From: Haliotis cracherodii
Lineage: Eukaryota
DNA length: 64,000 nt
Direction: 5' to 3'
Assembly: GCF_022045235.1 (NCBI RefSeq)
Contig: NW_027266297.1
Coordinates: 1,798,001-1,862,000 of the forward strand
The stretch's first letter is position 1. Every line of letters begins with the position of its first letter. Of the stretch, positions 2,525 through 52,474 are shown piece by piece. The translations under genes and the position numbers were made by a program. The notes beneath the pieces were generated by a model. It worked only from the letters and a program-made list of their open reading frames with translations, was not told the origin of the DNA and made no database searches.

Positions 2525-2576
2525 ATGACGGGGCTGTGTGCTGTGTTGCTGCTGGTTGCCAGTGTTAAGCCTTCCG
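2525..2576 (+). CDS. Gene 1 putative exon 1, signal peptide MTGLCAVLLLVASVKPSG
   Basis: Similar to gene 2 exon 1 (MTVLCGAVLLMAFVSLSAG); phase-1 end matches exon 2; donor G|GTGCAA is weak. Confidence 0.55.
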
Positions 2577-5500
2577 GTGCAACATTTTTGTGATGTTCAT
2601 AGGTGTATTGGCCAGAGGACACAGATATTGTGTTCGCTTGTTACTGAGATTCATGAATGTCTTCTGCAAAAGTCACCGTTGATAATGTAGATAAACTTTT
2701 TAATGATTTTTTTTGTAAGAGTTTGGTTGCATTTTATATATACATGTCCAGTTATTATACAACACAAGATGATTTTATCATGTATATAAATTGGCCAAAG
2801 TGAATCAATTAAACAAGAGATGGGAGGAAGACCAGAATGTGTTAACGATATCCAATTTTGAGCTAACAATTGCCGCACATTAATGTAACGATATAATATT
2901 GATGCAATTCCCATTGTAGGAACTGGAAAGTTGGACTTCTTTCTGGGATTCTATATTTGAATATCAGTTCTTTGAAGAGCAATGGTATCACATTTTACAA
3001 GTCGTTTTTTTCCTTCGGGGAATCCGAGTAAAATCTGTTATTGGTAAATTGTATCCAAACATATATTTTTGTAAAAATCCAAATCATCAGATCCTGCCAG
3101 ATCAGTGTTACCCTGCAACAATCGGAAAAGATATGCGGTGCCGTTTCTGGTCACAATTGAACAATAGCTGCAAGTATCATTGCTGTTATTCCCTTTTTTA
3201 CAAATCTAGAATTAGTAGGTAAAATGTGATGCAAGATGTTATACTGAAACCATTCCAAAGAAGTATCACGTGAACATCTGAAAGGTACATGGCCGTAGAA
3301 AGGCAAGATTTCGCCAAACATATATTTTTATCCAGGATTGCTTCTAATTTTCTACAATGTTGATTACTCTTTAAGCTTTGCTTTTCGAAATTTATATTCT
3401 GTAGTAATACTGTTTCTTTTTTTGTTTTTAATACATGAGATTTATTTAGGTCAGTGGAGTTCAGAATACAGCTAATTTTGATTTAGCTTACAACTCACCT
3501 GTATTTAACTGATACTTATTAGAAAACTTTGACAGGTCAAAACATGTCCTGAAAAATCTAAAATATTATTTCGGTATCAAATTCCCTCTTCATTCAATCT
3601 TGAGAAGTAGATTGTTGTCATTTCGGATATTTCATTGTACCAAATATTTTCGGGTTTTAAACTAGTGCTGAGAGTTTCCGAAGAGTTTGAACTGGCTTTA
3701 AAGTCCCATCAAGCAGAAAGGATATCACTGTAATAGTTGTCTCGTACTAATTGCACAATAACATTCTTTAGATTTTGACAATTTTATTGAAACATTATTT
3801 CGGAACTAAGGCAGATTCTTAGCAACAAGCTGGTCCCACTTCGCAGACTGTTTAAAGAATCTCCTTATCTTTGTTCATTTTTTAGACTGTATTATTTCTG
3901 TCAGTTTAGGATCATTGAAGTGACTATTGTTTTAAATGCGAAAACTAGCTGTTCTCTCTTCGTCTTGTTTCCTCCCCCATATACATCCAAAACACTTACG
4001 TTGGAAATCTTCAGTAAGTCTTTTCCCTGCGGAGTTGGAAGAGATGAAAACAAGTGACTGAGTTTTGGAATGAAATGCAATGTTAGAAAAGTGTTTCTGT
4101 TAGGATATGATAAGTTATGAGTTAACCAAATTTGATTACAAGTAATTCATATGTGCTCTGATCCAAGTTCTGTTTCCATTAAGAGAATGTCTTTTTTCTG
4201 ACCTGCACATATAATTATTGTTTTATCTATATTTACTGTTATATCGGAGAGTCTAACAAAATAATTAGCACTTTCACAAGTGGTCGCATGTTCTCAATCA
4301 TCTAAAGTATAGGTTGTGTCGCCTGCAAACTGATGTAAGAGATATTCTACGTTACCGATGTTTATTCCTTTTCATAATAGCGGGACAATATACCTTTATG
4401 ATACTCATTTAATCCTATGAGAAATAATAAATGATGAAACTTAGTAAACTGCAGACAGCAATGAGATAGGACGCGTACGCCATCTTCAAAAAAATATTGT
4501 TTCGGTTATTGCCTTTTTGATTAAATTAAACCAATTTTTTTAGTTACAGTTAACTTGCTATCTACATAGGTTTGAATTAAAGAGCGGATTAGAAATGTTC
4601 TTAAGTCATTCCAATAAGAACTTCAGAAACTCGTTAGTAAATCAACCAGTGCCTAGACTTTTCTAATTGTTTAAACACTTCAGACCCCTTACAATTTCTT
4701 CATATGCGTAATCACCTTCAAGTTGTGATGCTTGCTCATCACGTATTTTTTTGAACATCTTAAACTCCATCATCCAATCCTTGGTTGATATGCTAGTAGC
4801 ACACGGACAAAGTAATTGTCTTAAACGACAAACAACAAGAAACCCAGCGCTAGTGCCATATGGGCTGGAAAAGGAAAACAAACGATTCCTCTTGGGGGCA
4901 AAGGTCATTTAATAATGACAAATGTTTAATCGAAACATAAAACCTCCAAACCCCCCAAGAGGAATAACCTGGTGAAAGTTCTGTGGTTTAACTTAGTTCA
5001 CTATCCCTGCACTGAGAGATTGAGCATACACTGTAACATAGCGCTCATATGCATTGGAGCGCCAATCACCACGTAGCTTTATAAGCAAGGGTGGAATGCC
5101 AATGTCAAATGCATAGGAACATCCGCCTCTGCGGAAAGAGTGACCGCTGTATGCACCAGAATCATAACCACATTTGTCCAGATAATATTTCAATGTTTTA
5201 ACAAAACTTCTGTAAGTTAAACTCTTGAGGACTCCACTTCTGTCCACATATGAAAACAAAGGTGCATTTGAATGTTGAAGTTCTTCACTATATTGTGAAA
5301 GCAAATGTTCAAGTGCTTTAACAGGACAAAGCACAGAGTCGGGTTCCCTAGCCAGCGGTAACTTTAACACTCGCTGACCAAACTGTATAGTTTTTGTGTG
5401 TCTGACAGTAATCATGGCACTATCTTTGTCAGGGGAAATCTTGGCATCGTGCAGACTCAAGTAGGTCTGCTTTCTTGAACCACTGCCTCTAGTTTCAGGG

Positions 5501-8500: not shown

Positions 8501-11500
8501 TTCAAAATTTGTGCGGTCTTACTGTTCAGATGGCTGTCACTGCACCATTGTCGAAAGTCGAACTGACTTGGCTGTTCGTTTCCTTCGCCTTTATTATTCA
8601 CAGACATTCTTCTTTGAGTGAATTTAAACAAACAGACTGAGAAAAATCACCTGCACAACGTGTAGTTTGCAAGTTACGTTTGGCGCCTGTGACGTGTCCC
8701 TTGCAACAATAAAAAACAAATACCGCTTACAGCATAATCAGCCACTGACAGTCTGGATTGTCTCCCCTTGACTGTTAAATAAATGGACAGTAAATCAGAT
8801 GCCATGGCATTGCCGTTTAAATTAAAATAAACTAAGGTTTATTTCTCACATAACATTGTAATAGTGACTCAATGTCAACATCATAAATGGCTTGTTTACC
8901 CTACAGACTGAGAAGGAAAGAGCGGCCATTTTCACCGGTTTATCAAGTTAATCTCCATGTGATGCTTCGATACGAGTAAAGGATTTATTAAGGACATTTC
9001 TAGATTCGAGTCCCCAAAACAGCAAATTCTGCTTTTCACCTTTTTCAATCAATCTGATATGAAGAAATGCGGCCTGTCGTGCTCGAGTCATCGGCGGTGG
9101 GATGGCTCTGCTTTTCAGCCTGGTCAGACACTCTGACATGCACCTCGTCAGAGGCGCCAAAGTTTGTTGAATATTGATATTTTACGAATTACGTAGTATG
9201 TTGAAGGTTCCTTGTAGTAATTTGCTGAGTGGATATTGGCATGGTAAATATGTTGAAATGTCGGCAGTGTACATATTTTGCGATCTGGGCATTGCATATT
9301 TTGATATGTGCAGTGATGAAGGCGGTGTACATTGGTTGTGCTATGGACAGCGAACGGTACTTAAGAGAACCTCATTTCAGCTATAAGTATTGGCTAACTA
9401 TGAACGTTCCATCACGTTTTGCCAGTACCTGCAAATCTGAACAACGTTAAATCCTGAAAGTATTGTATTTTTAATTCCACTTCAAATACCTTCTATGAAT
9501 ATATAGAAAGTCATTCATTGATTGCATTAAGAATTAGGGTTACTGGACAATTTATGGAGGTTTTGAATCCAGTAAAATAAATGAGGAATGAACATGTCTT
9601 AAGATTTTAGAGTCAAGTAAAAAGTTAATTGTTCTGTTGAGTTGAAGATCTGGGAAGAGAATAGCTCTTCAGCAACCAATGCTTGCCGTAAGAGTCGACT
9701 ATGCTTGACGGGAACGGGTGGTCAGGTTCACTAACCTTGTTGATGCATGTCATTGTATCCCAAATGAGTGATCGATGCTAATTATGTCAGTCACTGGATG
9801 GTCTGGTCCAAATCGATTATTTACAGACCACCGTCATATACCTGGGATATTGCTGGGTGCGGCGTTAAACAATAAAAAAAAACAAATAAACAAATTGATG
9901 AGTGGTTTTGGCAGATTTCTTTCTCAGTTAGCACCTACATTATATGTGACATTCTTTGATAAAACAATGAATGTAGTGATGCTTGCTAGGGTGATGCTAT
10001 TTGAGACCTTGTCGGTGAGAACAACAACAACATTTTCTTGTAGGGCTGCTTTACTTTGGATGACAGCTGGCTGGATCAGAATGGTTTATCCAATTCCGTT
10101 TCCTCTTGTTCAGTTTGTACATTCTACCAATGACATCATCACGCACTTAACCTACTCTGAAAGACATTCAACATGTTCCTCTTCTCTTTTTGCACATTTG
10201 TTTTGCATATGCTTCGACAACATCCATAATGAGTTTAATGTTGGTATTAGACTGTTCATAATATTTTGTCCATATTTGAATAATTGACAAAGGTTGTTAT
10301 TGTCTACAGATAAGTGAACTGTGACGTACAGGGTGGTACCAGTATTACAAGAGTTTGCTACTCACGTGGCTATATCCCCCGCCCCTGTTGCAGAATTTAT
10401 GACATAATTAAATCTAAACAAACCCTAACCTTTTTTAACCGAGGCAGAACTTTTCATGGAAATTTTAGAAAAAAGATGAGTTCCACCTTGTATGATAAAA
10501 TTTTTGAACGGTTTATGAGTTATTCTCCGGAAACGAACCCAACCCTCACAGAATCTAAGTCCATCTTGTTGCCATGGAAACGTAAAAAATAAAAATTTCT
10601 AAAATGTCTCAATAGCAAAAGGTTCCAATTCAGCATGTACCTGACAGACCTGCAAAGTTTGATGAAAAAATATTGAACGGTTTATGAGTTATGCTCCGGA
10701 AACGAACCCTACCCTCACAGAACCTAAGTCCACCTTGTTGCCATGGAAACGTAATACATGAAAATTTCTAAAATTTCTCAATAGCAAAAGGCACCAGTTC
10801 AGCATGTACCTGACAGACCTGCAAAGTTTGATGAAAAGTATACAGTTTATGAGTTATGCTCCGGAAAACGAAACATGGCGGACAGACGGAAGGACGGACG
10901 GACGGAGCCCGTTTCTACATCCCCCGCCATCTTCTTTGGGCGGGGGATAATAAGTCTTTGCAGCCACAACTAGTGGAATTTACATCATGGGCTTCCAAGT
11001 CCATGTTCTGCAACACGTAACTGAATAAAATGGATGAAATGGTGTTCGTACAGGAAAATGATTGCACATGGTTAAATGGAATACGAAATATCGTGCGACA
11101 TTTTTGGAAACTGATTTCTGAGAATACTTCGTAGATTTAAGGCAATGTCTAGAACTATACTTTCTCGTCAATACCGTAGGCTCTTACTATGTGTACACCC
11201 ATTCATCAGCACAAGTTGTTGGAGTTATCAATATCTTTCTTTGACAAAGAGGATAGTTCTATTCTATTCTTAACCAATGGTTCCTGAAAGAGTGACAACA
11301 AATCTTCAAAGTGAATATTATCATTTGTCCTTAGTCCGTTGTAACCATGTCTGCCTTCAACGTCCTTGGGATGCTGGAAACAGACACAACATATGACAAC
11401 ATGACTCATATGCGTTTTTACAAAGTATCAGGAGAGGCTCATAACGTCAACAAATAGATTTAGGCCTTTATTAACTTCTATAGGTGCCAGGGAGAATGTC

Positions 11501-14500
11501 GCCCTGAACAAACCAGCATGGATGAGTACAACACGCCGATCTTCACAGCCTGCCAGTAAAGCTGTAGATGGAGTGATTTCTGCAACAGAGGAGAAGTACT
11601 CAGCCCACACCAAGGAGCATGAACCTAAGGCCTGGTGGAAGGTAGACTTACAGATAGATGTGCAGTCAGCACTGATTAAAATCTACTTCAGAAGAGATTG
11701 TAAGTATGACAAGTCTTTGTCATAAATACTTATTAATTGAAAGACATGTCATTACTTCGTTCATTTGTTTAAAATTTAAAATACGTGACATGTATAATTT
11801 GCAATATTAACATCGCTTTTTTTTCAAAAACACCGTATAACATGCATGTATTAATCCCTGTCTCTGGATAATTTAATGATTGTTTGAACAATATTTTCAT
11901 CTTAATTCCTTTGCATACAATTGTAATGTCTTTTTCACATAATGGTCACCTTAATTAATACAGTAATCTCAATGTACCAACGATACACTTTTTAAATGAA
12001 CAACATTTTATACGACTCCGATTTTCAATTTCTCAATTTCTTAATTATAACCACATTTAAACACCTGAAGTACCTTCTGTACAATATTTTCCTGCATAAC
12101 ATAATTGTTGGAAGAGTTATTTCTTTGTTGGATATTTAACTTCACTCACAGCAATATTCCAACTATATGAGGATGACCTGTAAATAATTAATCAGGACTG
12201 GTATTATGGGTTGCATACCATTCATCAGTATCCAATTGCTCACAATCAACAAATTAACATGATTCATTAGGTCCCTGTTTACGTTCAGGTTGCTTGGGAA
12301 CTATTCAGCCTGAAACCAGTACGAGGTTATTTTACCGGACGATCATAAACACGACCGTTAAGTTTGATATGAAGACTAAATATAAATATTTGACACAGGA
12401 ATATGCACATATTTTAAAAACATTTTTAGAAATTCTGAGTAGGAATTTAATTTGGTATACAATTAACATGGCATAAATGTTAAGATTATGACAATTCAAG
12501 ACTTTATAGTTAAGAACACAATGGGAAGTCAGAGTGGAAAGCTTTTCTTGGTTAACAATTAACAAGATGACAAAACAGTTAACATTGTGACAATGTCAGA
12601 CTTTATTGTTAACAACGCATTTATTTCAGTTACCGCTCGACGGAACGGACTTCAACTCTACACCTCGGAAATGAATTCATCTGATCCAAAAGGGGGAGAG
12701 CTTTGCCACTCAGTTACTGCACCTTGTGACTGCACAGGCATCCCTCATGTCCTTAATGTGACCTGTCGTGGAACCTGGCGTTTCCTGACTGTCTACACCG
12801 AGACGAGTTATGCTGGACAAGGTGCTGTGTTAGACTTTGTTGAAGTACAGGTGTTGAGTAAGTATTGTTCTGACACAATCATTGCAGATAGAAGTAAACG
12901 GTACGATTTGTTCAATTTCTTTAATATTTCTGAAACAGTTTGTACAAATCACTGTTAACAATATCTGTGTCGTCCTTTTATCAATCGAAATTGATCGAAA
13001 TATGAACTATATCGTTCAGAGGCGATTTTAACAGAAGACCATTTTATTGCAAAACTGACCTATTCAAATAGTACAATTGTAATTACATTCAAGTATCAAT
13101 AGTGTATTCGAGCAACACGTTACAATGTCATTCTTTATTGATCATGCAGCCTTTAATTGTGTTATGTTATTTTATAATGCGAATTGATGTAGAAACTGAA
13201 ACAGAATATAACCTACAACTAGTTAAAGAAGGAGTGGATGAAATAAGACTGGAAACGAGAATATTCCATTTAGGAATATAGAAAATTACTAAATACATTG
13301 AAATCTACAATGTCACTAAAACCCTCATTCCTGCGCATGTTTCTGTGATTTGTTCTTTTCCTGTTTCTGTTTGTATTCATTTGTAGACATTTGTATTTGT
13401 CTCAATCCCACAGCATGTCCCACTGGTGATTATGGCCCCGACTGTATCAGGAACTGCAGCTCCCGACATTGCAAGACGCCATCCCCTACATGCGGCTCAA
13501 TCAGTGGAGACTGTCCAGCTGATGGCTGTCAGGATGGATGGACGGGGACGGACTGCACTACCGGTAACAACTTTAGTCCAATTGTTTTGAATTTGCCAAT
13601 CCGAGCAGAAATTCCTACTCATTTGCAGAAAGAAACGGACAGGCAAGAAGGGGGAAAACAATATGTTGCCATCTGCTTCTCACGTAATAATTGACCCTTT
13701 ACACATTTTTCACCGAAAATAAATCTCAATGCAAAATTCGACTTTCCGTCTCGAGGTGTACATTCAAGTCGTAAAATCCCGTCCACCTCGCTTGTGAGTG
13801 AGTTTATTTAGTCACATCGTCAGTATCTCAGCCATATCGTGACTACCTCGCTTGTGACAGATTGAATGAATGAACTCAAATGCGGTTTTAATAATGAAAA
13901 GAACATGCTAATTTACGTCATCCAGCTTTCACTCACTCCTACAGGTGCCAGTGTGAATGTCGCCCTGAATAAACCAGCATGGATGAGTACAACACTCCAA
14001 TCTTCACAGCCTGCCAGTAATGCTGTAGATGGAGTGACTACTGCAACACACTACAAGTACTCAGCCCGTACCAAGTATCATCAACATCACGCTTGGTGGA
14101 AGGTGGACCTACAGACACAAGTACAGTCAGCACTGGTTAAAATCTACTTCAGAATAGATTGTATGTATGACACACCCATGTGATGGGAATAAAACCTATT
14201 AAGTATAAACATGCTCTTGCTCTTTTCAGTTTAAAAGTAAACACATTGTTTAAGAAAAGGCATTTGTTATGTGACAGTGTATTGTTTTTGTTGAGATTGG
14301 GTAGTCGCTCGTTGTGTTGTGTTTGGGCCCATATCAGAAGCTTACCCACTGTCACTGCTGGATGAATATATATAGAATACTAAACGAGCTCCCGTGTAAT
14401 ACCAATTTTATGAAACGATTGAATACTTCTGGTATCTGACGAGCAAAAGCGAGTCAGATACCACAACTATTCACGAGTTTCATAAAATTGGTTTTACACG

Positions 14501-17500
14501 GGAGCGAGTTTAGTATTTTATTTATTACTGGCCATTTATAACGTTTTTATATACTGTTGAATGTGAATAGGCTGACACCTACACGACCCACGGCATAATC
14601 CAACTGTGTTTAACACAGCAATACTTCAAATACGTCAAAAGTTGAAACGTATTAATTTAATACCATGCAACGGTCCACCTTTAGAATTCGGGTGTCCGTT
14701 CCACAAAATTATCGTAGCGTTAAGGTTATCGCAACTCATATACTTTAATTTAGACCAACGACTGTCGTTGCGCTACCGTACGATCGCCTTGTGGAACGGG
14801 GCCTTGCACCTCAATTTTACAATCACGTCACAATACCCGATGACGTAATTTGTGGAATTTTATTGCAAGAACCTTCGGCGAAACAATGCCATGTAACGTC
14901 AACCTAGCAACAAGGTTGCTGGGGTCATCGAGTGTACATAAGCTCCTCTCAGTGATCTATCATCTCCACACGCTACGTCGTTGAATAAGCCAAGGGATGT
15001 TGAGAGCTTTCAATGTTTGTTAGAGAAACGTGTTCCGAGAGTACATAAGAACGCGTTTTGGTATTACACAATTTGTAATACAGCTGTATGTTTATTAAAC
15101 GGGTGATCTCTTCACGGGCAAGTAATAAATGTTATTAGTGTCTATTTGATACTGACCACTGCCATTAAATTATTTATTGCCGTTGAATATTGTTGCGACT
15201 CTATTGTTTACTGCCATTGTAATTGCTGTGCATTTGTTTGTTTTGATTTGTAAACTTTGTGAATTGTGTAATACATTTGATGATTGTATGCCACTGGTTG
15301 ATTGTTGGTTTCACACTAACTTATGTTAAGTACAGATTTCTGGATTAACGTAATTATAGTTTCAGTTTGGGAATCGACACGTAACACATGCACATATGAA
15401 TATACACTCTGGTGTTGGATAAGCTAATGATTGTTTTAAATATTTGCTCTCATATAATGATAACCTCATACTATTAGATTAAAAAAAGGTGGATGTGGGC
15501 AATCTCTTTATACAAAGGATAATTTTTACAAATCAATGACCATCTTTGTAACTCGATCTTTCCATTTGTCTTTATCATTGTAAACCATTTTCAACTTCTG
15601 TGCATTGTGTCCATGAATAATTGTGGGAAGAGTTGTTTTCTTATTGGTGCTTAACGTCGCTCTCAGCAATATTCCTATATCATGATGACCTGTATAATGA
15701 CCTAGTGATTGATAGTATGAGCAACACATCCACGTAATTGGTGTACATTTTTTCACAATCAGCCGGTCAACACAATTTAAAAAGTCGCCTTGTACAAGTA
15801 TTATTGTTTTTTGGGTTGTTGTTTTTACGGACAGTCACGACTGCTCAATATCATTTGAGCTGTTTCTTTACACAACATATCCACATGGTACAAATTAATT
15901 AGGAAGACAACATACGAATAAACGGTAAAATAATATTCACACTTTAACTAAAACGTTATTGGGAATTCAGAGCGGAAAATCTTTTAAAAACATTTTTGGA
16001 AATTCTAAGTAGGAATTTTCTTTGGTATACATTTAACATGGCATAAATGTTAAGATTATGACAATTCCAGACTTTATAGTTAAGAACACAATGGGAAGTC
16101 AGAGTGGAAAGTTTTTCTTGGTTAACAATTAACAAGATGACAAAACAGTTAACATTGTGACAATGTCATACTTTGTTGTTAACAACGCATTTATTTCAGT
16201 TACCGCTCAACGGAACGGACTTCAACTCTACACCTCGGAAATGAATTCATCTGATCCAAAAGGGGGAGAGCTATGTCACACAGTCACTGTGCCCTGTGAC
16301 GGCACAGGCATCCCTGATGTACTGAATGTGATCTGTCACGGGACCTGGCACTACCTGACTGTCTACACTGAGACACGTAATTATGGATTGAGTCCTATGA
16401 TAGACTTTGCTGAGGTACAAGTGTGGAGTGAGTACTCTTCATTGACGCAAATGGTTGGGTTTATTCCATTTTTTAAATGTTTCTGAAACTTCATGTAGAA
16501 ATGACTGTTAACAGTGAATGAGTGGGTGAGTTGGGTTTAACGCCCCTTTAAACAGAATTTCAGTTATATCACGGCATATCAGCTTAATGTGGGAGCAAAG
16601 GCCAAAAAGATGCAGGTCTTTGGTGAACCCGACGAGCACGGATATGGTGCTGACAAACCTAGATACATAATCGGGGCGAACCGGGATTAGAACCCACAAT
16701 CATATGTTTCTGGTGTGCCCAAGGGACGCAACTCTGCACAGCGAATCTCGGCGCCTTGGACGACTGGGCCACACGGACCCTCTGACTGTTAACAAATATC
16801 CATCGAAATTTATGAAGTTTTTTATCCATACTATTTTGTACGATAGGTTATGAACGCTAAGAACATTTTATCAAAAAGCAAAACTGACCTCATCAAACAG
16901 TACAATTTTGACAACATTCAGGTTTCAATGATGTATTTGAGGAAAACATTGGATCCGGTGATCTTCGATGCGAATACCAGATTCGTCCCAATACTGAGTG
17001 CTTGCTGTCAGCACCGTATAATGCTCACGGGCTTCAACAAAGTGATAAAACAAACGGTGACCGTGATATAAATGAAATACAAGGGATACCAGAGATCACC
17101 CTGACATACTTGAAACGACAAATGTTATTCAGAACCGACTGTCAAATGTATGGTGTAAGATCCCGTTGATAATGAAGTCTGGTTGTTTCAATCATTGTAT
17201 GGAAATGACGCAATTTGGGCTGTGTTCATAATGGTTTTAAAGATTACAATAGCATTTGGATTTAATTGAAGTTATAAATCCTAGAAACTTTTACATAGCT
17301 ATCCCTCGTGATAAATTGAGAGCAACATTTAATTTTCAATCAACAGGGTTTTGGTGTGCATGAAAATAGTTGGGAACTTGTATTTATTCCAATTTTAATG
17401 GATGTGGTCAATTTGATAAAACTGAAAGTAACTCAACTCAGAAGTATTCAGAGTTGCAGGAATTCCTGATTGATAGAACATTTAGACAACTCCTCTCCTT

Positions 17501-28320: not shown

Positions 28321-28329
28321 GTGGATGTG

Positions 28330-29420
28330 TACAGATACAGCTGAGCTGGTACTAAACGTGACAGGATACGTAATTCATAGAACAGACAGAAGACCCTTTT
28401 CCCCGATTTGATTGTAGTCATTCCCCTCTCCCTCTCTGGTGACGTAATTAAACTCAACACAGTCATGATCATTCACGCCAGGCGTGGCCGCGTAAGCTGG
28501 AATCTCTCCGGTGTAGCTTCAGCCAGTGTCTGTCGCTCTCCTCTCTGTATGGCCTGCGCCACTTTTTCATTCTAATATGGAGTATGGTATAATAGGGGTC
28601 TGTGTTAACGCTACAACGTTAGGCAACAATGTCAATATACAACATATTTACAACATTGCAAACGTTATGAAAAGTTAACTTTCGGACTTTAGCGGACATA
28701 TCATCAACCAAGCTATCAGAAACAGTATCACAGCCAATACGACTGCTCCGCTTATGACGCCACTTGTAACAGGAGACGGGATAACATGCACATTCACATT
28801 AGTCTGGTAGTTGTGAATAATATCGTCCGCATATGACAATGTAAACAATATAAAGTAAAGAACATAAAACCGTTGTTTGTCGAAAGACTTGCATAATATC
28901 CAACAACCTTACTACGTGCTAATAAGACACTAAATGGCACATTTGTTCATATTCTGAAAATGCATGTAAGGAGAGAAGGCCAAGACGAGATTCCAACCTC
29001 TGGCATCCATATCACATCGCTCCACATGAAACCAAACAGCATTTTGGGTCACTGGACATTTCAACTTCTTTAGAAATTCGATAAAAAGGATTATACTTTC
29101 GGCAAGGACTTGAGACTTCAGCAGTGTGGAATAATCCAAAGCTAATCAGGGTAACTGAGATGAGGTCACCACAATTGATTCCAGGCTCCTTTATCCTTCA
29201 TCAAACAATTTACATGAGTAAATGCTATTAATTGTAAATTTAAACAAATTATTAAAAGAGGCACGTATATTACTGTCACACTCACGTACGTGACACGTGT
29301 CTCCCCTTCAGCCGTCCTGACAACATGTCCCGTCCGTCCCGCTGCATACGCCACCTATACATCCTTCTCTGCAGGCTTTCCTGCACCCCGGGCCGTACGC
29401 TCCAGCCTGAAGACATGCAA
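28330..29420 (-). pseudogene. Inverted decayed paralog of the EGF-TM receptor family (EGF, TM and tail exons)
   Basis: 29420-29286 reads GAYGPGCRKACREGCIGGVCSGTDGTCCQDG*RGDTC with donor GTGAGT. 28803-28679 reads GVISGAVVLAVILFLIAWLMICPLKSE. From 28571 MKKWRR...NDYNQI, with frameshift. Confidence 0.7.
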
Positions 29421-29623
29421 ATTAACATGTCGACCTTCTCTTAATTTGTGACGATAGCCATAGCTTTGTATTGAGTAGATATGCAAAATTAATTTAATTA
29501 CGCATCTTCACAATGAAATGCACATTTATGCTCGTGTTCGCATGTTCAGACTGTGAAAGAGTTGTGTAACCTGAATGTCCTTTTCCCGACTGTGAAGCCA
29601 AGGGTTTTCATGACAAAATATAA

Positions 29624-41951: not shown

Positions 41952-42206
41952 TTGTGTGTATGTTTAACGCCGCACTCAGCAATATTCCAGTCATATGAAG
42001 GCGATATGTAAATAATCGAATCTGGACCAGACAATCCAGTGATTGACATCAAGAGCATCCATGTAATTTGGATCGATAACATGCATCAACCAAGTCAGCA
42101 AACCTGACGACCCGATCCCCTTTGTCGCCTCTTACAACAAGCATTGTCGCCTGTTACGGCGAGCATGGGTTCCTGAAGACTTATTCTAACCCGGATCTTC
42201 ACGGGT
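41952..42206 (-). mobile_element. SINE-like family B, full length
   Basis: Perfect 12-bp TSD ATTACTTTATCT (41940-51, 42207-18). Confidence 0.88.
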
Positions 42207-42705
42207 ATTACTTTATCTACATACATGGTATTCGCAATGACATTATCTATCCCTATACCTGCTTTGTCGATAAAACAAATTCAGATATATGGAACTGAAT
42301 GCGTTTTAAACAGATCTTGAAAAAAACACCTTTAGCCTGAAGTGTTTTTCCAAAACGAATATATGTATAGAAAGCTTTTTAGAAAACAATCAAGAGCGTC
42401 ACGAAGTGGATGAAAATGCGCATGTACTTCAGATTAAAACTGTATTATTGCAGTCAGTAAAATGTGAACACATATCATTATCCAAGTAGCATATGTTCTA
42501 AACGGCCAATGTATTCACCATATACACAATAGAATCACATGTATTTATTCAAACTTCTAGCCAAAAATGTTATGTTCTAAATTCACAGAATTGGTACAAA
42601 TCAACACAGAGTTATAATAAATTTCAGAATTTGGAAATCAAAAGAATTGTGTGTTAATATGAAACTGGAAGGTTTAACTCTTACTGACATCGTGAGTTGT
42701 CACTT

Positions 42706-42715
42706 GGGACTTTCC
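42706..42715 (+). promoter_or_regulatory. Canonical NF-kB (kappaB) site GGGACTTTCC upstream of gene 2
   Basis: Exact classical kB decamer ~180 bp before the ATG. Confidence 0.55.
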
Positions 42716-42893
42716 ACAAGAGCTATGTTCTCTCCTTGTCCCCACTTCGTCCCACGTGGTTTATGTCCAATGCAACAAGTGGGATAGTGTAAAGTGTAAG
42801 CGATGTCAGGCCACCACAACCAGTCTGTCACTATCGCCTGTTGTAGTAATAATTAGTAGTACACGTTCTGTACGAACTTTATTCACACCAATA

Positions 42894-45800
42894 ATGACTG
42901 TGCTGTGCGGCGCAGTGTTACTTATGGCTTTTGTCAGTCTCTCAGCAGGTAAGCTTAATTTGTTTCGATCCAATTGTATATATATACATACGCCTATGNN
43001 NNNNNNNNNNNNNNNNNNNNNNNNNNNNNNNNNNNNNNNNNNNNNNNNNNNNNNNNNNNNNNNNNNNNNNNNNNNNNNNNNNNNNNNNNNNNNNNNNNNN
43101 NNNNNNNNNNNNNNNNNNNNNNNNNNNNNNNNNNNNNNNNTAATTCTACATTCCTGGGGTGACACTCTGGATATCCCTTGCACGAATTCTTACAAAGGCG
43201 TTGTGTCTGATCATTAGATCCTTTAAACTGGAACTGAGCATACATCGAAAGACACCAGAGAGTTTGACTGCACGTTCGTTCACGAATATCCCCACTACGA
43301 CCCATCCCAGTGAAAAATCGTAGAAATGTTCATCAACTGTCGTAGTATCGACTCGATAAATGTCTCGACTGACAGTTACTTTCCACAGCAGTCTTTGACT
43401 TTACCTTTATATCTATTTTACACGTCTCTATAATGATCGGTCAACTGATGAGTGATGACTAACACATGTAACCGCCACAGGTTCATTAACAAATTCGGAA
43501 ATCTCTCCCGTCACGGTTATGGTGTCGGCCATTTTGACGTCTTGTACTTGATATGAATGTAGTACGACGCGCTGTCATTGTGACTGACTTGCGGGGGTAC
43601 TTCTTAACACACCTTTTTCTATGATGATTCTATTTTAATACATACACTGTACCTTGTGAACAAACTACAACAAATATTCCTGTAAATCAATTTCAGCATA
43701 CATACGCTAATGTCATCTCTCTTTGTGGGGAACTATTTTGTTCCGCGACACAGCTGGTTGTTGTATGGCTGTTCCTTTTTTTTTGTTCTTTTTTTGTTTG
43801 TTTGTTTGTTCTTTAACGCCGCACGCAGCAATATTCCGGCTGTGGTCTGTGGTTCCGACGGTGGTCTGTAAATAATCGAGTCTGAACCGGACAATCCGGC
43901 TGTTCCTGGAAACAAGTCACACGTTAATTTTGGTGCTTGATCGCCAGCGCTATAAAATAGGGTTATAAAAAATTATAAGAATTGACTTTTCACTTTGTGT
44001 GAGTTCATTGGAGTGAAGGTCAAACATTGTATGAACGTCGAAGCAGTTTGGCCGTGAGTCTATGAACGTTCATAGTCCATAAACTCACACAAAGTGAAAG
44101 TTAATTATAAGATATATGACCTCATTAGAGCAGAACAAATCCTTTTCTGGGGCTCGAACCTCCATGTTGGTGCTCAGAATGACAAACAAACCCTTTAACC
44201 ACTAGGCTACATAAAAAATAAGGGTAAGCCTTTTACCTTTCTGGAAGTTTTTGGCACATTTAGAAAAATGAAGTTGTATATGTCTCGATATTTAATTTTC
44301 ACTGGATATAATAGTGTATCATTTTATTTAGCATTAGAGATATAATATTCATTTCATTTGCACTACAAACTTCGGGGGACTTTATAGACGAGAGGAGATT
44401 TTAATTAACAGAGTCCTTTCGGTTAATGTCAGTGTGGTACAAGAAACTTGTGGTTTAACGGCGCTTTGAACAGTACTGTAGTCATCTCATGGCGTGTCAG
44501 ATTTATGATGCAAGCCTAATAAAGCAAAATATCGTTTTTGCAATAGAGTGTATTACATATTCATGTCTGCGTTGAGAGGTTGCCCGTGGCGGGGAATACT
44601 AAGAAAGCCGCCTTAATTCCAATGCAGATGTTTGGGTTTATAACATTGTGGTCCACATGTGCATTTTAAGAAACAAAACAACTCCATATCTGCTACTTCC
44701 ACGGAAGAGCTATTGGTGGCACATGGGTAAGCATGTGTGCTTTGTTTGATCTTGTCAACTACTACTCAGTCAGTACCCTCTGATACAGGTAAAGGGCAAA
44801 ACATTGCTCTGAACAAACCAGCATGGATGAGCACATCCTGGCAAAACTGCACTGCCAGTAAAGCTGTAGACGGAGTTATAAATACAAAGGCCTGGTGGAT
44901 GTCAGTTCATACTGATGTGTACCAACCATCAGCTTGGTGGAAGGTGGATCTGCAGAGCGAAGTACGGTCACCTCAAGTACTTATCTATTTCCGAAGCGAC
45001 TGTAAGTATTTTTAAATGTGTATACTAGTATTCCACATGTAATATTTCCCATAATAATATCAAGTAAAACTTAATGTATACATCGCATACAACACTTCGC
45101 GACTCGCATATCGAGACCAGGACCCTCATAACAGTATTGACGTGCAACAATCAGAACAAACTGTATTTGTTAGCTTTGCAAGTGGACAAATAGCTGTGCC
45201 TTTATGAGATATTATCGTACTTGATGGCGCACATCCTTAGCGAGTTTCTGACTGCAGATTACAAAAAGAAAATCTAACGGACAAGACGAAGCAGTCAGGA
45301 TGTATGAGCTGCCGCTGCAGGAGGACTTGAACAATATCTTCTATTTAAAGCATAAGATAGCTGTATGGTGTTGTTTGGCGACTGACTACAAGTGCCAGCA
45401 TTAGAATGTACGTTCATCATCATCGAGGTTATGCATAGCGCCAGTGAAGTCGGTCAAGGTATATCCGTTGTCTTCAAATAAAAAAAATAATTCAAAAGCC
45501 CAAAGTTTATACACCACCTGTAAATTCACCAAAGGTATCGAGGATACATGTACACATCATTGGCGATATCAGGATTTTATTTACTCACGGAAATGACGAA
45601 GGTAAATGTTATATCAGTTGAATAAGCAAAGATAAGTTTCATCAAAATAACTGATAGTATATACAGTGTCCACGAAATACTTGAAGGTATAAACAGTGTC
45701 CACGGCGTAACGGTAGGTATATGCAGTGTCTACAGAGTAACTGAAGGTATATGCAGTGTCAACGTAGTAACTGAATGTATATGCAGTGTCCACAGAGTAA

Positions 45801-48800
45801 ATGAAGGTATATTCAGGGTCTCCGGAGTAACGGTAGGTATATGCAGTGTCTACAGAGTAACTGAAGGGATATGCAGTGTCCACGGAGTAACTGAATGTAT
45901 ATGCAGTGTTCACGGAGTAACTGAAGGTATATGCAGTGTCCACAAAGTAACTGAAAGTATATGCAGTGTTTACGGAGTAACTGAAAGTATATACAGTGTC
46001 CACGGACTAACTGAAAGTATATGCAGTGTTTACGGAGTAACTGAAGGTATATGCAGTGTCCACGGAGTAACTGAAGGTATATGCAGTGTTCGCGAAGTAA
46101 ATGAAGGTGTACACAATCTGCAGTAAGTAGTGGAGCCGTTTCGTGACAGATATTGGGTCAATTGTGCACTTTGTGATGAAAGCATGTCCCTGTCTGGCAG
46201 CAAATCAGGACCCGGTCTGGCAGCATTAGACCTGTGCATAAAGAGTCTTGTGTCACTCTCTCCATGAGAATATGGATGTAGATCATTGACAACATCTCAC
46301 CCTTTGTTACATAGAACCATTTTGCCGCAAGTCTTTAAAATCTTTTCCCCCGAATTCTAATGAAATAACTTGTTCAAGTCAAGAACTTTAACAGTTCTCT
46401 CTTGTTCTCGTCAGTTCTTAGAGATGCCTACCATGTGTGAAAATATTTGCTGTGAGCAATCAACAAACTTCTTAACATATGGGAGATATGCCGAAAAAGT
46501 AAGAGATGCATATTATGTTTTTCTCACTTTAGATTACCTAAAGCAACATAAATAGTCTATTGTCATAGATGTATTTACTTTACAGATGTAGTGTTGGGTA
46601 AATACGTTCCAACATGTTCATGTTTCTTTATATATTTAGGTTGTGAGTCAGGCTCAAACGAGATATACTAGAAAATTTCATTACACCATAGCGGCCATAT
46701 TGATTTGTGTTTGGGTGGCCCCATATCTGAACATATTTGGAATGTCATTACGTACGTGATGGAATATATACAGCGTCCATGTACCCAAGTGTCAATGAAA
46801 GTAAACCTGGTATGAAGACTCACTGCTCATTGCAGCAGTTAATAATAAGTCACTGATCATGTAGTCATTAAACGCACATTATTGACGAATGAATTGAAGT
46901 CATGTGCACCGTAAAATCATTAGTCTTAAATTGCCATGTATGTTTAAGTATCATGCATGATAACACTCGGTCATTGCACGCATAAAATTCCATTAAGAAA
47001 GACAATCGTAAGACATTTACGGTACACTTGAGACGGAGTGAATATGGTTTAACTGTGGAAAGCAACCTTGCTGACGACAAACCCTCGGTCAAGACAGGTC
47101 AAGACAACATCATTTTGGGGTTGAGGCTACAAGACTGAAGGTTACTCCTCTTCACAGATTACTCCGGGTTAGGAGCGCTCTATTGGTCATCGATGACAGG
47201 TGTATGGTACGGTGACGCAATTATCCATCCTCACATCTTTCCATTCCTTCAGACCCATTGACGTTACATCGCTGGACATGGACAAGTCATGGTTTTTTGT
47301 TTGTTTTTCAAAGCCGCACTCAGCAATGTTCCAGCTATATGTCGGCGGTCTGTAAATAATCGAGTCTTGACCAGACAATCCAGTGATTGAAATCATGAGC
47401 ATCGATCCACGTAATTGAGATCGATGACATACATCAACCATGTCAGCGGGCCAGACCACCCGATCCCGTTAGTCGCCTCTTACGACAAATATAGTCGGCA
47501 AGTATGGTTTGCTGAAGACCTATTCTACCCTGGGATGGACACATGGATATCAATATATTTTTCTGTTGCATATTGTTCTGTTTCTTTCTTTGCATTTATT
47601 TATAATTGTCCACGATAGTCAGTGTTACAAAGGTTGTTATTACCGCTCTATATAACTTATATATATTTCTTTCAAGACAAGCTTCGACGTAACGGAGTAC
47701 AGTTCTACACGTCAGTGACAAATTCATCTGATCCTAAAGAGGGCGATTTATGTTATACGGTCAGAGGACAGCAAAGTGGCGCGGACATCCCTGACGTACT
47801 GAATGTGACCTGTCCTGGAGCCTGGCGCTACCTGACTGTCTACACAGAGACAGGAAATGATAAGCATGGCCCTATCCTAGACTTTGCCGAGATACAGGTG
47901 TGGAAGGAAAATATCGAAACGAGCGATGATGGTCAGGAGACTCTCTCACAGACTACAACGTCAGTTGTGTTGAGTAAATATAGTTTGCTTCTGTTTTAAA
48001 ATATGTTTAACAAAACGTATATATCCGCCTGGTATTTTGTTACATACTCACATATATGTAGTTTTATCTGGAATAATTCATTACAATTTAGAAACAACAT
48101 TTCATTTTTGTTCATCTCATTTGCAGATTTTTAAATATCTAGCCACATGCAAAATACACATACATGTATCACGACACAACAATAAATGGAGACTTACTAA
48201 CGGATAAGGATTGTCTGATCACGCCTTGTCGAGATGGGATCAATATAAGAGATCAACATCAACAAAAGTGGTGACTTTGTGAATAATTGTTTATTGAAGA
48301 CGAGTCCACGTCAAGGATTCCTTAAAATGCTATTTGCTAAAACAACCGTTATTATTTTAGTATTGCATGTCCAGTGGTCAAGTTCACTTCAAACTGATTA
48401 TAATTAATACAATAGTTTAGAAATCGACCTTTACCAAGTGCACCATCAACACATATGGCATACCCAGGTATATAAGTTGTTGCAGACAGATCTTAAAAAA
48501 CACTGATATACTGGGAAAGTTATGTGTTTCTGAACTGTATTGATTGCTTTCTCTGATTCTTTTCAAGCACCAAGTGTCATGCCATTAACCACAGAACATG
48601 AATGTGGAGCAGGAGAATGGTATGGAACCAATTGTATGAAGTCATGTGCTGACCGTCAATGTAAGCGTGTGTCCAACTGTGATGTGATGCAAGGGAGGTG
48701 TGATGGTGGATGCATGGCTGGATGGTATGGAACAGACTGTACACAGGGTAAGAGTGTTCGGTTATTATCTGTTTTACCGTAGGAGACGTGTCCACAAAAT

Positions 48801-51800
48801 GGTTTACAGGACTCCATTGTGCCAATAAGCCAACACAGGGTGGCAGCTGGGTATATGTCAACAAGGTGGAGTTAAGACATCCATTGTGTCAGTCGACCAA
48901 CATAGGGTGCCAGCTGGGTAAATGTCAACAAGGTTGGGTTACGACATCAATTGTGTCAGTCAACCAACATAGGGTTGCAGCTGGGAGTGTGTCAACAAGG
49001 TGGGGTTACGACATCCATTGTGTCAGTCGACCAACATAGGGTGGCAGCTGGGTAAATGTCAACAAGGTGGGGTTACGACATCCATTGTGTCAGTCGACCA
49101 ACATAGGGTGGCAGCAGGGTAAATGTCAACAAGTTTGGGTTACGACACCCATTGTGTCAGTCGACCAACATAGGGTGGCAGCTGGGTGCGTGTCAACAAG
49201 GTGGGGTTCAGACATCCATTGCGTCAGTCGACCAACATAGGGTGGCGGCTGGGTGCGTGTCAACAAGGTTGGGTTACGACACCCATTGTGTCAGTCGACC
49301 AACATAGGGTTGCAGCTGGGTAAATGTCAACAAGTAGGGGTTCAGACACCCATTGTGTCAGTCGACCAACATAGGGTGGCAGCTGGGTATATGTCAACAA
49401 GGTGGGGTTCAGACATCCATTGTGTCAGTCGACAAACATAGGGTGGCGGTTGGGTAAATGTCAACAAGGTGGGGTTACGACACCCATTGTTTCAGTCGAC
49501 CAACATAGGGTGGCAGCTTGGTAAATGTCAACAAGTAGGGGTTCAGACACCCATTGTGTCAGTCGACCAACATAGGGTGGCAGCTGGGAGTGCGTCAACA
49601 AGGTGGGGTTCAGACACCCATTGTGTCAGTCGACCAACATAGGGTGGCAGCTGGGTGCGTGTCAACAAGGTGGGGTTACGACACCCATTGTGTCAGTCGA
49701 CCAACATAGGGTGCCAGCTGGGAGTGCGTCAACAAGGTGGGGTTCAGACACCCATTGTGTCAGTCGACCAACATAGGGTGGCAGCTGGGAGTGTATCAAC
49801 AAGGTGGGGTTCAGACACCCATTGTGTCAGTCGACCAACATAGGGTGGCAGCTGGGTGCGTGTCAACAAGGTGGGGTTCAGACATCCATTGTGTCAGTCG
49901 ACCAACATAGGGTTGCAGCTGGGTATATGTCAACAAGGTGGGGTTACGACATCAATTGTGTCAGTCGACCAACATAGGGGGGCAGCTGGGAGTGTGTCAA
50001 CAAGGTGGGGTTCAGACACCCATTGTGTCAGTCGACCAACATAGGGTGGCAGCTGGGTGCGTGTCAACAAGGTGGGGTTCAGACATCCATTGTGTCAGTC
50101 GACCAACATAGGGTGGCAGCTGGATGCGTGTCAACAAGGTGGGGTTCAGACACCCATTGTGTCAGTCGACCAACATAGGGCTGCAGCTGGGTATATGTCA
50201 ACAAGGTGGGGTTACGACATCAATTGTGTCAACAAGCCAACAATTGTGTCAAAAAGCCAACAAAGCTGGGAGTGTGTCAACAAGGTGGGGTACAAACCAA
50301 CATCGTGTAAAAAGGCCAGTATGTATATGTATCAACAACGTGGGGTTTTAAGACCTCGATGTTGTAAATAAGCCAATCTAGAGTGTCAGATGGATGTGTA
50401 TCAACAACGTGGGTTTTTAAGACCTCGATGTTGCAAATAAGCTGTTATATCTGTCGTTCATTGGACATGTATGATGTTGTGCAAATTAATGTTCATCCTT
50501 TCAGAGAAAACAACTGTCTATCGAAAAGTGTAGCAGGGCAACAAATACGAACTAACGTCTGTTTTGTACGTGGTGCCATTGTAAATATGATATCCGATTA
50601 CCCTTCATGCAGACAAACCGGCCAATAGTTAGTTGCTCTCTTGTGTATACACTTTGATTTACATCAGTAATGCAGCCATACTTCAGTCATACACATAACG
50701 TAAGTAGCCATGAAACTATATTTGAACCAATGCAGAAGTTAGTGCATGTATCCATAAAATGTGTTCTTGCCTTTAACGCAGTTGAAAAGACGTCATTTAT
50801 ATACATGCTCATCTTTGTGTACAGAATGCTTCCAGGGACTGGAATATGGAGCTAATTGTGTGGGTAACTGTAGTAGCCGAATGTGCGAGGGAGGGTCAGT
50901 CTCCTGTCCCCGGGATACGGGCCGATGTGAGTTAGGCTGTCAGTCGGGATGGACGGGAGAAGACTGCATCAAAGGTAAAAGGACAGCTTATATAAGACTG
51001 TATATTACCTTTAACATGACACATGTTCAATGAAGACAGTAAAACTGATATCATGGTATTTCTCTTTTATGAAGAGTATCTTACTAATTATTTGGAATGT
51101 AACATGTCTGAAGGCAGATGTTGTACCACGCTAAAAATGCTTATATTATGCTTACCTCAAGGTTTCACACTGACCATAGGATGGATGACTAGCCCCATGC
51201 TAGCTGGTAGCACCAGTAAATACTTCAATGTGATCACTCATAGCACATGCCTTTCTCTGTGCGAAGATCGGAATAAACATATTTTTTCCTATATAATATC
51301 ACTTCTCCACAATGATGAAAAAAACAAGTAATGATATACGTTTAGATGGTGTTCATTGTTTATATGTCATTGCGGTGACACTTTGAAAGCCTCATCAGAA
51401 TCAGGGACATGAGAACAAAATTGGCATGAATATTTAATTTTGACCCTTCATTTTAACAGTTGGCTGTTTGAGACAGAATGCTTCACTACATTATTGTATT
51501 ATTATACTTGGACCACTTGCAAGAACGCCTTCAAGCATTATTCCAAGCATTGTTCAAGTATAGCCTTGTACACAAGTCTCTTGGACTCTGTATGAATGTC
51601 GTGCGATCTACATGTGTGTGATTATCCGTTATTAGCAACTTAGGAATAAGTTTATATACCATAACGGTTTCGTCCTGTTTTTGGTTTTTTTTGCGGTTCA
51701 CATTCCAATGTTTATTTTTTTCAGAATTAAGTACATGCACCCTCTCCCCCAACAATATCAGTGTTCTTGATATCATTGTGGGCATAATGGTGGGCGTGCT

Positions 51801-52474
51801 ACTCATGCTGGTTCTTGGGCTTTACCTTCGTTCACTTAAAAATGGGAAGTGAGTATGATTACACATTCTATCATGAATTTGGAAAATGTTCGATCTGATT
51901 GGTTAATCAGAGGTTTCATATTACAATAACCATTTTTGAGAGAAACTAATATTTCCTGAATTGAAATAATGAAATGTACATTGTATGCTTACAAATGCAT
52001 ACGTGTGGTTACTACTATATTAATAGTATTTATAGTAATCCATGCTGAACCGGAAATATATATTAACAGTTTAAGTGACAACAGAGAGTTTAAACTGTGT
52101 CGTTTTTCTGAGGACGGCACAACGATCGATGTGACGTCAAAATAGCGATGTGCGTTGTACCATTGTCCTTTCAAAGTTTTTTTTAAGTTTCGTCAGCGTT
52201 AATAAAAATTAAATAAAAGCGTCCGAAAAAAAAGTAGGAACAACTGATTCACAATACGTTAAGCTTGTGCAAATTAATTGATATTATTTGGGGGAATATA
52301 ACTGCATGAATCATGAATAAGGAATTGCTTCATTATATTGTCTTTGTAATATACAGGTTGCACTGGAATTGTCGACCGGTGCAGGGACAAGAGATCATTG
52401 ACGTGCCTAAATTCGCTGATGTACATGCTACAAAAGACACGAACAATGTAAACATCATAGAAGACATACTGTAA
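42894..52474 (+). CDS. Gene 2: F-type lectin / EGF transmembrane receptor, ~378 aa, SP-FTLD-S/T stalk-EGFx2-TM-short tail
   Basis: Exons 42894-42948, 44789-45001, 47677-47973, 48568-48747, 50825-50974, 51725-51848 and 52357-52474 have AG/GT ends and splice into one open frame of 1137 nt; AATAAA at 52707. Confidence 0.85.
42999..43140. other. Assembly gap (142 N)
   Basis: Run of n in intron 1 of gene 2. Confidence 1.
44789..45001 (+). CDS. Gene 2 F-type lectin N-half exon
   Basis: NIALNKPA..AVDG..SVHT..WWKVDL..IYFRSD. Confidence 0.9.
45645..46110. repeat. 30-bp minisatellite (~15 copies)
   Basis: Unit ATATGCAGTGTCCACGGAGTAACTGAAGGT. Confidence 0.95.
47295..47536 (-). mobile_element. SINE-like family B copy
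   Basis: Reverse complement of the family B sequence. Confidence 0.8.
47677..47973 (+). CDS. Gene 2 F-type lectin C-half plus linker exon
   Basis: KLRRNGVQFY...LDFAEIQVW plus an acidic/Thr-rich extension; exact donor uncertain (47973 or ~47931). Confidence 0.82.
48568..48747 (+). CDS. Gene 2 EGF-like exon 1
   Basis: CGAGEWYGTNC...GCMAGWYGTDC. Confidence 0.88.
48815..50300. repeat. 67-bp minisatellite (~21 copies) between gene 2 EGF exons
   Basis: Unit GTCAGTCGACCAACATAGGGTGGCAGCTGGGTAAATGTCAACAAGGTGGGGTTACGACATCCATTGT. Confidence 0.97.
50825..50974 (+). CDS. Gene 2 EGF-like exon 2
   Basis: CFQGLEYGANC...GCQSGWTGEDC; 150 nt. Confidence 0.9.
51725..51848 (+). CDS. Gene 2 transmembrane exon
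   Basis: VLDIIVGIMVGVLLMLVLGLYL then RSLKNGK; donor GTGAGT, phase 2. Confidence 0.85.
52357..52474 (+). CDS. Gene 2 short cytoplasmic tail exon
   Basis: KLHWNCRP...IIEDIL*; aligns with gene 1 RLLWRN at its start; no Tyr. Confidence 0.75.

Follow-up and report, generated by a model that had tools for sequence, protein, structure and literature searches.

In the snail vector Biomphalaria sudanica, the SudRes1 locus, a cluster of membrane genes with MEGF and galactose-binding-like domains, some of them receptor phosphatases, is associated with resistance to schistosomes (PMC12297450). This cluster is the closest described system to the two genes examined here, gene 1 and gene 2, which lie in a stretch of 64,000 nucleotides of the black abalone Haliotis cracherodii (RefSeq assembly GCF_022045235.1, contig NW_027266297.1, positions 1,798,001 to 1,862,000). 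This whole stretch is referred to as the window, and positions are counted from its first letter unless a contig is named. An earlier sequence-only reading proposed that gene 1 and gene 2 form a pair of fucose-sensing receptors with opposite tails. We found that the window probably contains two neighbouring genes with no special relationship to each other, both belonging to a large, clustered abalone family of single-pass receptors; gene 1 would signal through a tail that resembles an ITAM (immunoreceptor tyrosine-based activation motif), and gene 2 would have no phosphotyrosine signalling of its own.

Like SudRes1, the abalone genes are clustered single-pass paralogs that combine a galactose-binding-like domain (F5/8-C superfamily) with MEGF-type repeats. 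Some SudRes1 members have tandem intracellular tyrosine-phosphatase domains, as do the abalone database proteins P0060-P0066, whereas gene 1 and gene 2 have no phosphatase domain. ITAM-like or short tails are not mentioned in the consulted part of the SudRes1 description, and the likeness is one of architecture. Draper, CED-1 and MEGF10 resemble gene 1 in the EGF-repeat ectodomain, the single transmembrane segment and the ITAM (YxxI/L-x6-12-YxxI/L) with further tyrosines; the ITAM of Draper binds Shark (PMC6219719). The RefSeq name of gene 1, 'MEGF11', reflects this resemblance. However, no EMI domain was found by Pfam in the abalone genes, in which an F-type lectin follows the signal peptide, and no NPxY motif was present in the 89-residue tail of gene 1; therefore, as judged from their sequences, the abalone genes are not Draper/MEGF10 orthologs and would be alike in working only. 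Their EGF units gave weak Pfam scores for DSL, EGF_STAB1-2, EGF_PEAR1L and laminin-EGF, all below the cut-offs. The oyster receptor CgIgR, whose ITAM recruits CgSyk (PMC6994640), is, like gene 1, a single-pass receptor of a mollusc whose own tail bears an ITAM, although its ectodomain consists of Ig domains instead of lectin and EGF units and the animal is a bivalve, not a gastropod. Because CgIgR signals via CgSyk, ITAM-Syk downstream machinery exists in molluscs.

With regard to the head domain, the F-type lectins (eel AAA, striped bass FBP32, lectinolysin, SpX and the membrane-bound furrowed of Drosophila) share the fold and the basic triad positions with the abalone domains, which differ from them in the spacing of the triad, in having no adjacent Cys-Cys and in the absence of the triad His from one domain of gene 1. 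Tandem F-type domains and mosaic proteins bearing a transmembrane segment are known, and none of the F-type architectures listed in the consulted part of the published survey (PMC5712786) combines the domain with an EGF stalk and an ITAM-like tail. As far as the consulted parts of the literature extend, the new element is an ITAM-like tail on a lectin-EGF ectodomain, coexisting with phosphatase-tailed near-twins. Finally, the vertebrate families KIR, LILR, Siglec, SIRP and CD200R resemble the abalone family in being clustered multigene families with both long tyrosine-bearing tails and short tails.

The window has a G+C content of 39% and a single run of N at 42999-43140. Gene models were constructed from the reading frames of the + strand and splice sites, and each exon translation was checked separately against the database proteins P0001, P0042 and P0043. 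Every coding exon of both genes matched a RefSeq protein exon by exon, and all the borders were AG/GT. Gene 1 extends from the ATG at 2525 to the stop codon at 24756-24758, and gene 2 from the ATG at 42894 to the stop codon at 52472-52474, both on the + strand and 18 kb apart. Gene 1 corresponds to XP_071116896.1 (P0001, 'MEGF11' of H. cracherodii), to which it is identical from an internal Met onward; gene 2 corresponds over its full length to XP_071117611.1 (P0043, 'uncharacterized protein' of H. cracherodii). In both genes the ectodomain exons are all in phase 1-1, the transmembrane exon is 1-2 and the tail exon begins in phase 2; in both proteins the order is signal peptide, F-type-lectin-like domain(s), EGF repeats with eight Cys, a single transmembrane helix and the tail. 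Both genes are thus real, intact and annotated before this analysis. The two + strand genes with shared intron phases that had been read from the sequence were therefore borne out at their positions. The shared ectodomain plan held for the kinds of domain and not for their number: the ectodomain of gene 1 consists of two lectin domains and five EGF exons, and that of gene 2 has a single lectin domain followed by a Ser/Thr-rich linker and two EGF exons. The features are as follows.

2525..2576, + strand: first exon of gene 1 (start codon, signal peptide, phase-1 donor); 17 residues match the P0042 N-terminus.
11484..11699, + strand: first half of gene 1 lectin A, with the F-type triad His, WWKVDL and FRRD; Pfam PF22633/PF00754 sub-threshold for the exon alone, PDB matches all F-type lectins.
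12630..12857, + strand: gene 1 lectin A, second half; P0001 residues 61-135, AG/GT, phase 1-1.
13414..13563, + strand: gene 1 EGF-like repeat 1 (eight Cys); P0001 residues 137-185.
13945..14160, + strand: gene 1 lectin B, first half, with Arg in place of the triad His (Leu there in the H. rufescens ortholog).
16200..16427, + strand: gene 1 lectin B, second half; P0001 residues 259-333.
18569..18715, + strand: gene 1 EGF-like repeat 2, lacking Cys3 and Cys5; the same two losses in H. rufescens P0042.
21270..21419, + strand: gene 1 EGF-like repeat 3; P0001 residues 384-432.
21899..22048, + strand: gene 1 EGF-like repeat 4, nearly a duplicate of repeat 3; three such copies in H. rufescens.
22677..22817, + strand: gene 1 EGF-like repeat 5; P0001 residues 484-529.
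24281..24401, + strand: gene 1 transmembrane exon, phase-2 donor; exon match to RefSeq.
24500..24758, + strand: gene 1 tail exon, which encodes YAAL-x9-YAAL and YENV and carries the stop; tail 89/89 identical to H. rufescens.
42894..42948, + strand: first exon of gene 2, which holds the start codon and the signal peptide; P0043 residues 1-18.
42999..43140, no strand: assembly gap in gene 2 intron 1, placed by its position relative to the flanking exons.
44789..45001, + strand: gene 2 lectin, first half (His, WWKVDL, FRSD); exon match to RefSeq.
47677..47973, + strand: gene 2 lectin, second half, and Ser/Thr-rich linker; P0043 residues 91-188.
48568..48747, + strand: end of the gene 2 linker and EGF-like repeat 1; P0043 residues 190-248.
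50825..50974, + strand: gene 2 EGF-like repeat 2; exon match, covered by spliced RNA contigs.
51725..51848, + strand: gene 2 transmembrane exon with an interfacial Asp and a phase-2 donor; exon match, covered by spliced RNA contigs.
52357..52474, + strand: gene 2 tail exon, free of Tyr, ending in EDIL and the stop, followed by the 3' untranslated region (3'UTR); RNA contigs extend to 52619 and 52664.

The tail of gene 1 was then examined. The tail exon contributes a split Arg and 85 residues, giving the 86 residues described earlier, and 89 residues including five Tyr follow the hydrophobic core. As had been read, SDYAAL is followed in the tail by another DYAAL, nine residues separating the first Leu from the second Tyr, and later by YENV. 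When the tail was shuffled 100,000 times with its composition preserved, the ITAM-type pattern occurred in 0.5% of the shuffles, whereas the pattern of an immunoreceptor tyrosine-based inhibitory motif (ITIM) occurred in 22% and YxN in 34%. The tail was identical between H. cracherodii and H. rufescens at 89 of 89 residues (lectin B, 92%). Furthermore, six weaker copies of the tail exon on contig C34 at 9.33-9.60 Mb retain DYAAL, the nine residues and YDVI, and often YENL. In the aligned tails of four Haliotis species, the juxtamembrane GRLxW, DYxxL and YD(V/F)(I/V/L) are retained, and YEN is present in most. A search of the tail region against the protein database returned only its own cluster, a blank that says little, as the tool requires shared words of five residues. 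The ITAM-like character of the gene 1 tail, conserved and unlikely to arise by chance, is well founded at the sequence level, and the earlier suggestion of an ITAM-like YxxL-x9-YxxL pair is supported by the conservation in paralogs and across the four species. SDYAAL was also read as an ITIM. The pattern does fit; however, it rests on a single Ser at position -2, which is found in gene 1 and is replaced by N, P, Q or D in the aligned relatives, and no paralog retains it. Judged by sequence, the ITIM reading is not well founded.

The tail exon of gene 2 encodes 39 residues, with 45 residues past the hydrophobic core and no Tyr, in agreement with the short tyrosine-free tail proposed before. No sequencing run is recorded as RNA; two of the runs, X1 and X2, were treated as RNA in this study, and their contigs cover the 3' half of gene 2. 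Because these contigs skip the introns exactly, show no intron depth and have almost no letter differences, we consider them to be spliced mRNA of H. cracherodii. They join 50824-50972, 51723-51848 and 52357-52619 or 52664, so that the transmembrane exon is spliced onto the predicted tail exon and the contig continues beyond the stop into 3'UTR sequence. The assembled form therefore lacks the longer, Tyr-containing last exon that had been named as a refutation of the earlier reading. The orthologs P0014 (H. rufescens) and P0067 (H. asinina) stop at the same position, end in EDIL, lack Tyr and have the Asp where the helix begins. Gene 2 is a conserved and expressed short-tailed member of the family. 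Its tail exon starts with GKLHW, comparable with GRLxW of the ITAM-like class, at the same phase-2 splice, which points to common ancestry; the short tail thus seems to be derived from the same ancestral tail exon as the long tail. No remnant of tyrosine motifs was found beyond the stop in any frame, and a search of the tail exon against its own genome returned a single copy, namely itself.

The Asp at the outer edge of the gene 2 transmembrane segment was located as proposed. It lies in SVLDII, three residues past an N-x-S sequon, ahead of a hydrophobic core of 17-19 residues and in the first turn of the modelled helix. Its position is interfacial, not buried, which excludes it as an intramembrane charge. 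The helix contains neither Lys nor Arg. In addition, genomic contigs of two other organisms (runs X19 and X21; 50500-53400) were about 95% identical to the 3' region of gene 2, with small indels in the introns and 3'UTR, including 12 nt omitted at 52542. From this match, gene 2 appears to be carried by related abalone species or divergent haplotypes.

Subsequently, the head domain was compared with known structures. The first lectin exon of gene 1 matched only F-type lectins in the PDB (best E 8.7e-5). Whole P0043 matched FBP32 best (E 2.7e-8), and the remaining significant matches were all F-type lectins (lectinolysin, SpX modules and eel AAA). Pfam PF22633 scored 42.2 bits on full-length P0001 and 28.2 bits on P0043, against a cut-off of 27.8; single lectin exons gave PF22633/PF00754 scores below the cut-off only, and lectin exon 2 had no match among solved structures by sequence. 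P0043 was modelled with AlphaFold from an alignment of 38 family sequences, and the model had a predicted local distance difference test score (pLDDT) of about 95 across residues 21-168. When this model was compared with PDB folds, the ten best matches were F-type lectins (including lectinolysin, SpX, eel AAA 1k12 and FBP32) with E of about 1e-11, ahead of CBM32 modules; the target TM-scores were 0.76-0.85, and 0.44 for the two-domain FBP32 chain. Taken together, the sequence matches and the model indicate that the head domain has the F-type lectin fold and belongs to that family, as the sequence-only reading had expected.

The published fucose-binding motif of F-type lectins is H-X24-R-X-D-X4-(R/K), accompanied by two adjacent Cys (PMC5712786). 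H-X27-R-x-D-x4-R is present in lectin A of gene 1 and in the gene 2 lectin, and HMMER aligned the His and RxD with their counterparts in FBP32 and SpX. The His and RxDx4R are retained in most lectin domains of the abalone family. Fucose binding by lectin A and by the gene 2 lectin is thus a reasonable inference from the motif. In lectin B, the His is replaced by Arg (Leu in H. rufescens), a departure from the motif; because of this loss, fucose binding by lectin B appears doubtful.

The family was surveyed across the genome and the genus. Lectin exon 2 has at least 54 copies in the genome, nearly all on contig C34, where arrays of lectin exons were found at 0.95-2.24, 8.5-9.8 and 56.6-56.9 Mb; gene 1 and gene 2 lie within an array of some 35 lectin-exon copies at 0.95 to 2.25 Mb. 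A HMMER search with lectin exon 2 against 1.84 billion representative proteins gave 41 matches, and the sources examined were all Haliotis except for one Gigantopelta protein and one ENA sequence. Among the proteins recovered from four Haliotis species, four classes of tail were distinguished: ITAM-like, receptor tyrosine phosphatase (two Pfam PF00102 stretches in P0061), short Tyr-poor and acidic YVEP-repeat. The survey for two tail classes that had been suggested thus recovered both the ITAM-like and the short tails, and the family has more classes than those two. The short Tyr-poor class comprises the gene 2 group ending in EDIL and a two-lectin group ending in ETRV or ETCV. The latter subfamily was observed as P0002, P0044, P0049 and P0050 in H. 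cracherodii and H. rufescens, with tails of 34-40 aa, and its ends resemble what we take to be a class I PDZ ligand. As a phosphatase form was found in Gigantopelta, the phosphatase class extends beyond Haliotis. Because all the ectodomain exons are in phase 1-1, the ectodomain modules can be duplicated and swapped.

These results point to a family that joins an ectodomain of one or two lectins and an EGF stalk to varied ends, namely an ITAM-like tail with three tyrosines, tandem tyrosine-phosphatase domains or short tails. As for gene 1, its sequence makes an ITAM-type signalling receptor plausible. Binding of a glycan by lectin A would cluster the receptor, a Src-type kinase would phosphorylate both YAAL sites, and the phosphorylated pair would recruit a tandem-SH2 kinase of the Syk/Shark type, on the model of Draper and CgIgR; phosphorylated YENV could recruit a Grb2-type adaptor. 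Gene 2 most likely binds its ligand without phosphotyrosine signalling of its own, and could be a modulator or a receptor linked to scaffolding or sorting. The gene structures, the fold, the presence and conservation of the motifs, the splicing of gene 2 and the size and relationships of the family are shown by the data; in this scheme, the sugar specificity, phosphorylation, binding partners and cell type are what we infer. If the ITAM-like tail signals as in Draper and CgIgR, abalones would possess a large, fast-diversifying set of glycan sensors feeding into tyrosine-kinase signalling. The black abalone is endangered and has been hit by infectious disease, and candidate recognition receptors are accordingly of practical interest.

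Several points weigh against this account. The same-species RefSeq model P0001 lacks the upstream signal exon of gene 1. In the H. rufescens ortholog P0042, the N-terminus matches 17 residues of the window exon at 2525; because of this match of the signal peptide, the start at 2525 is considered to be right and P0001 to be N-terminally short. The first intron of gene 1 (8.9 kb) contains a putative retroelement. The tail of gene 2 is only 40% identical to that of H. asinina, compared with 72-77% for the ectodomain; since this tail is weakly constrained apart from a few anchor residues, any role of EDIL is a guess. Furthermore, the fucose motif of the abalone lectins is a variant with a His-Arg spacing of 27 instead of the published 24, and the adjacent Cys-Cys (Cys82-Cys83 of AAA) is not present after RxD, where F-T is found in gene 1 and Y-K in gene 2.

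Of the alternatives, the one that survives best places the pairing at the level of the family and outside the window: near-identical ectodomains would be carried on either an ITAM-like tail or a tyrosine phosphatase, with opposing output, and short-tailed members such as gene 2 would serve as modulators. In H. cracherodii, the lectins of ITAM-like P0059 and phosphatase P0061 are 83% identical and the signal peptides have the same start. In H. rufescens, those of ITAM-like P0057 and phosphatase P0056 are 87% identical, with 75% identity over 397 ectodomain residues. ITAM-like and phosphatase labels interleave in the lectin tree. In addition, an ITAM-like gene on contig C34 at about 9.604-9.614 Mb and a phosphatase gene at 9.650-9.672 Mb, both on the - strand, are neighbours about 36 kb apart that share 82% identity in their lectin exons; judged by sequence, these two genes are better candidates for opposing partners than gene 1 and gene 2. 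However, a young tandem family would show similar ectodomains through recent duplication and exon shuffling alone, that the two classes oppose each other on a common pathway is assumed, and gene 1 has no close phosphatase partner among the sampled proteins. We regard this explanation as, on balance, unlikely. A wider form of it is still more tentative. In that form, the abalone counterpart of the paired immune receptors would have been built from different parts, as a family of more than 50 copies with near-identical ectodomains on an ITAM-like tail or a phosphatase; short-tailed members ending in EDIL and in ETRV/ETCV would tune or anchor it, and the two window genes would belong to it as parts without forming a pair of their own. 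If true, sister genes with an opposing enzyme on nearly the same ectodomain would represent an independent invention of balanced activating and dampening receptors outside vertebrates.

The family might instead act in cell adhesion, gamete recognition or tissue patterning and not in non-self recognition or phagocytosis. F-type domains occur as oyster sperm bindins, and their diversification in molluscs has been tied to fertilization (PMC5712786). By analogy, however, ITAM-type tails and EGF-repeat ectodomains are known from engulfment receptors, and in Biomphalaria, a gastropod, a gene cluster sharing the architecture of the abalone ectodomain has been associated with resistance to a parasite (PMC12297450). 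A non-immune role is rather improbable in our estimation.

As described above, gene 1 and gene 2 were proposed to be a dedicated pair that recognizes the same fucosylated ligand with opposite outputs (signalling/decoy or inhibitory/activating), as in KIR, LILR and Siglec. The two genes are indeed 18 kb apart on one strand with shared exon phases, a long Tyr-rich tail stands beside a short Tyr-free tail, and the tail exon of gene 2 starts homologously to the ITAM-like class, just as short-tailed partners arise from long-tailed ones. The ectodomains nevertheless do not behave as those of partners. Over the whole domain, the gene 2 lectin is only 55% or 58% identical to lectins A and B of gene 1, which are 74% identical to each other. 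When the paralogs of the gene 2 lectin exon were ranked, the copies of gene 1 came 19th (63%) and 21st (60%), leaving at least 17 paralogous lectin exons in the genome that are nearer to gene 2; the nearest (75%), at 1.232 Mb, has phosphatase-type exons next to it. A maximum-likelihood tree built from 36 lectin domains placed the gene 1 domains in one clade (100/99) and gene 2 with its orthologs in another (98/97), and no supported branch joined the two clades. The low lectin identity, the non-sister clades and the unequal domain counts thus make the two genes a poor fit to paired receptors, and the close ectodomain similarity typical of the vertebrate systems is not supported for them by the sequences compared. 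The vertebrate receptors also differ from these genes in the other hallmarks, as the ITIM is not conserved (its -2 Ser occurs in gene 1 alone, with the frequency in shuffles given above), no basic residue is present within the gene 2 helix and there is no known ITAM adaptor; moreover, the contrast within the abalone family is that of an ITAM-like tail with a phosphatase domain. A dedicated pair is accordingly very unlikely, and the proposed pairing of these two genes is not supported. Taken alone, the window gives a modest result, as its genes were annotated before.

A short tail that is unique in the genome and weakly conserved in H. asinina might suggest that gene 2 is decaying after a recent nonsense or frameshift change shortened this tail. 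Such an origin is hardly credible, since the seven exons are all open and have consensus splice sites, spliced mRNA is present in two runs, the stop position and EDIL end are common to H. rufescens and H. asinina, and no remnant of a tyrosine motif follows the stop in any frame; a truncated pseudogene was ruled out on the grounds of splicing, conservation and the lack of such a remnant. Two adjacent, not specially related family members thus remain the preferred reading of the window.

Other observations were made within and around the two genes. Three large open reading frames (ORFs) on the minus strand (349, 585 and 348 aa) were found at 4993-8631 within the first intron of gene 1. EGF repeats 3 and 4 of gene 1 (21270-21419 and 21899-22048) are near-identical copies, which lie inside a repeat of roughly 640 bp. 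With a length of 736 aa compared with 655 aa, the H. rufescens ortholog carries three copies of the EGF3/4-type repeat; the stalk length therefore differs between the species. EGF repeat 2, without Cys3 and Cys5, looks like a still-conserved repeat that has lost one disulfide.

The N run at 42999-43140 starts 50 nt past the gene 2 signal-exon donor (42948|GT), and 1.6 kb separate its end from the coding exon at 44789. Under the gene model it is intronic (gene 2 intron 1) and is crossed by no reading frame; in both P0043 and P0014, the signal peptide leads directly into the lectin with zero extra residues. Two tandem arrays lie in the introns of gene 2, outside the coding exons: 20.9 copies of 67 bp at 48830-50231, between the two EGF exons, and 15.4 copies of 30 bp at 45648-46108, between the lectin exons.

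Between the two genes, at 29311-29421 (- strand), a lone open frame of 37 aa shows a MEGF-like Cys pattern with no Pfam family and may be a stray exon fragment. For two ORFs at 55385-56386 (- strand), a quick Pfam test at E up to 0.1 gave no glycosyltransferase family. Downstream of gene 2, a very high-copy repeat was observed at 53258-53651 and 53849-54242, with summed contig depths ranging from 1e4 to 3e5 in the RNA-like runs and from 2e5 to 3e6 in the large ones. This repeat has many joints at 53476/53919 and loose ends resembling a tRNA B box, and is probably an element of the short interspersed nuclear element (SINE) type.

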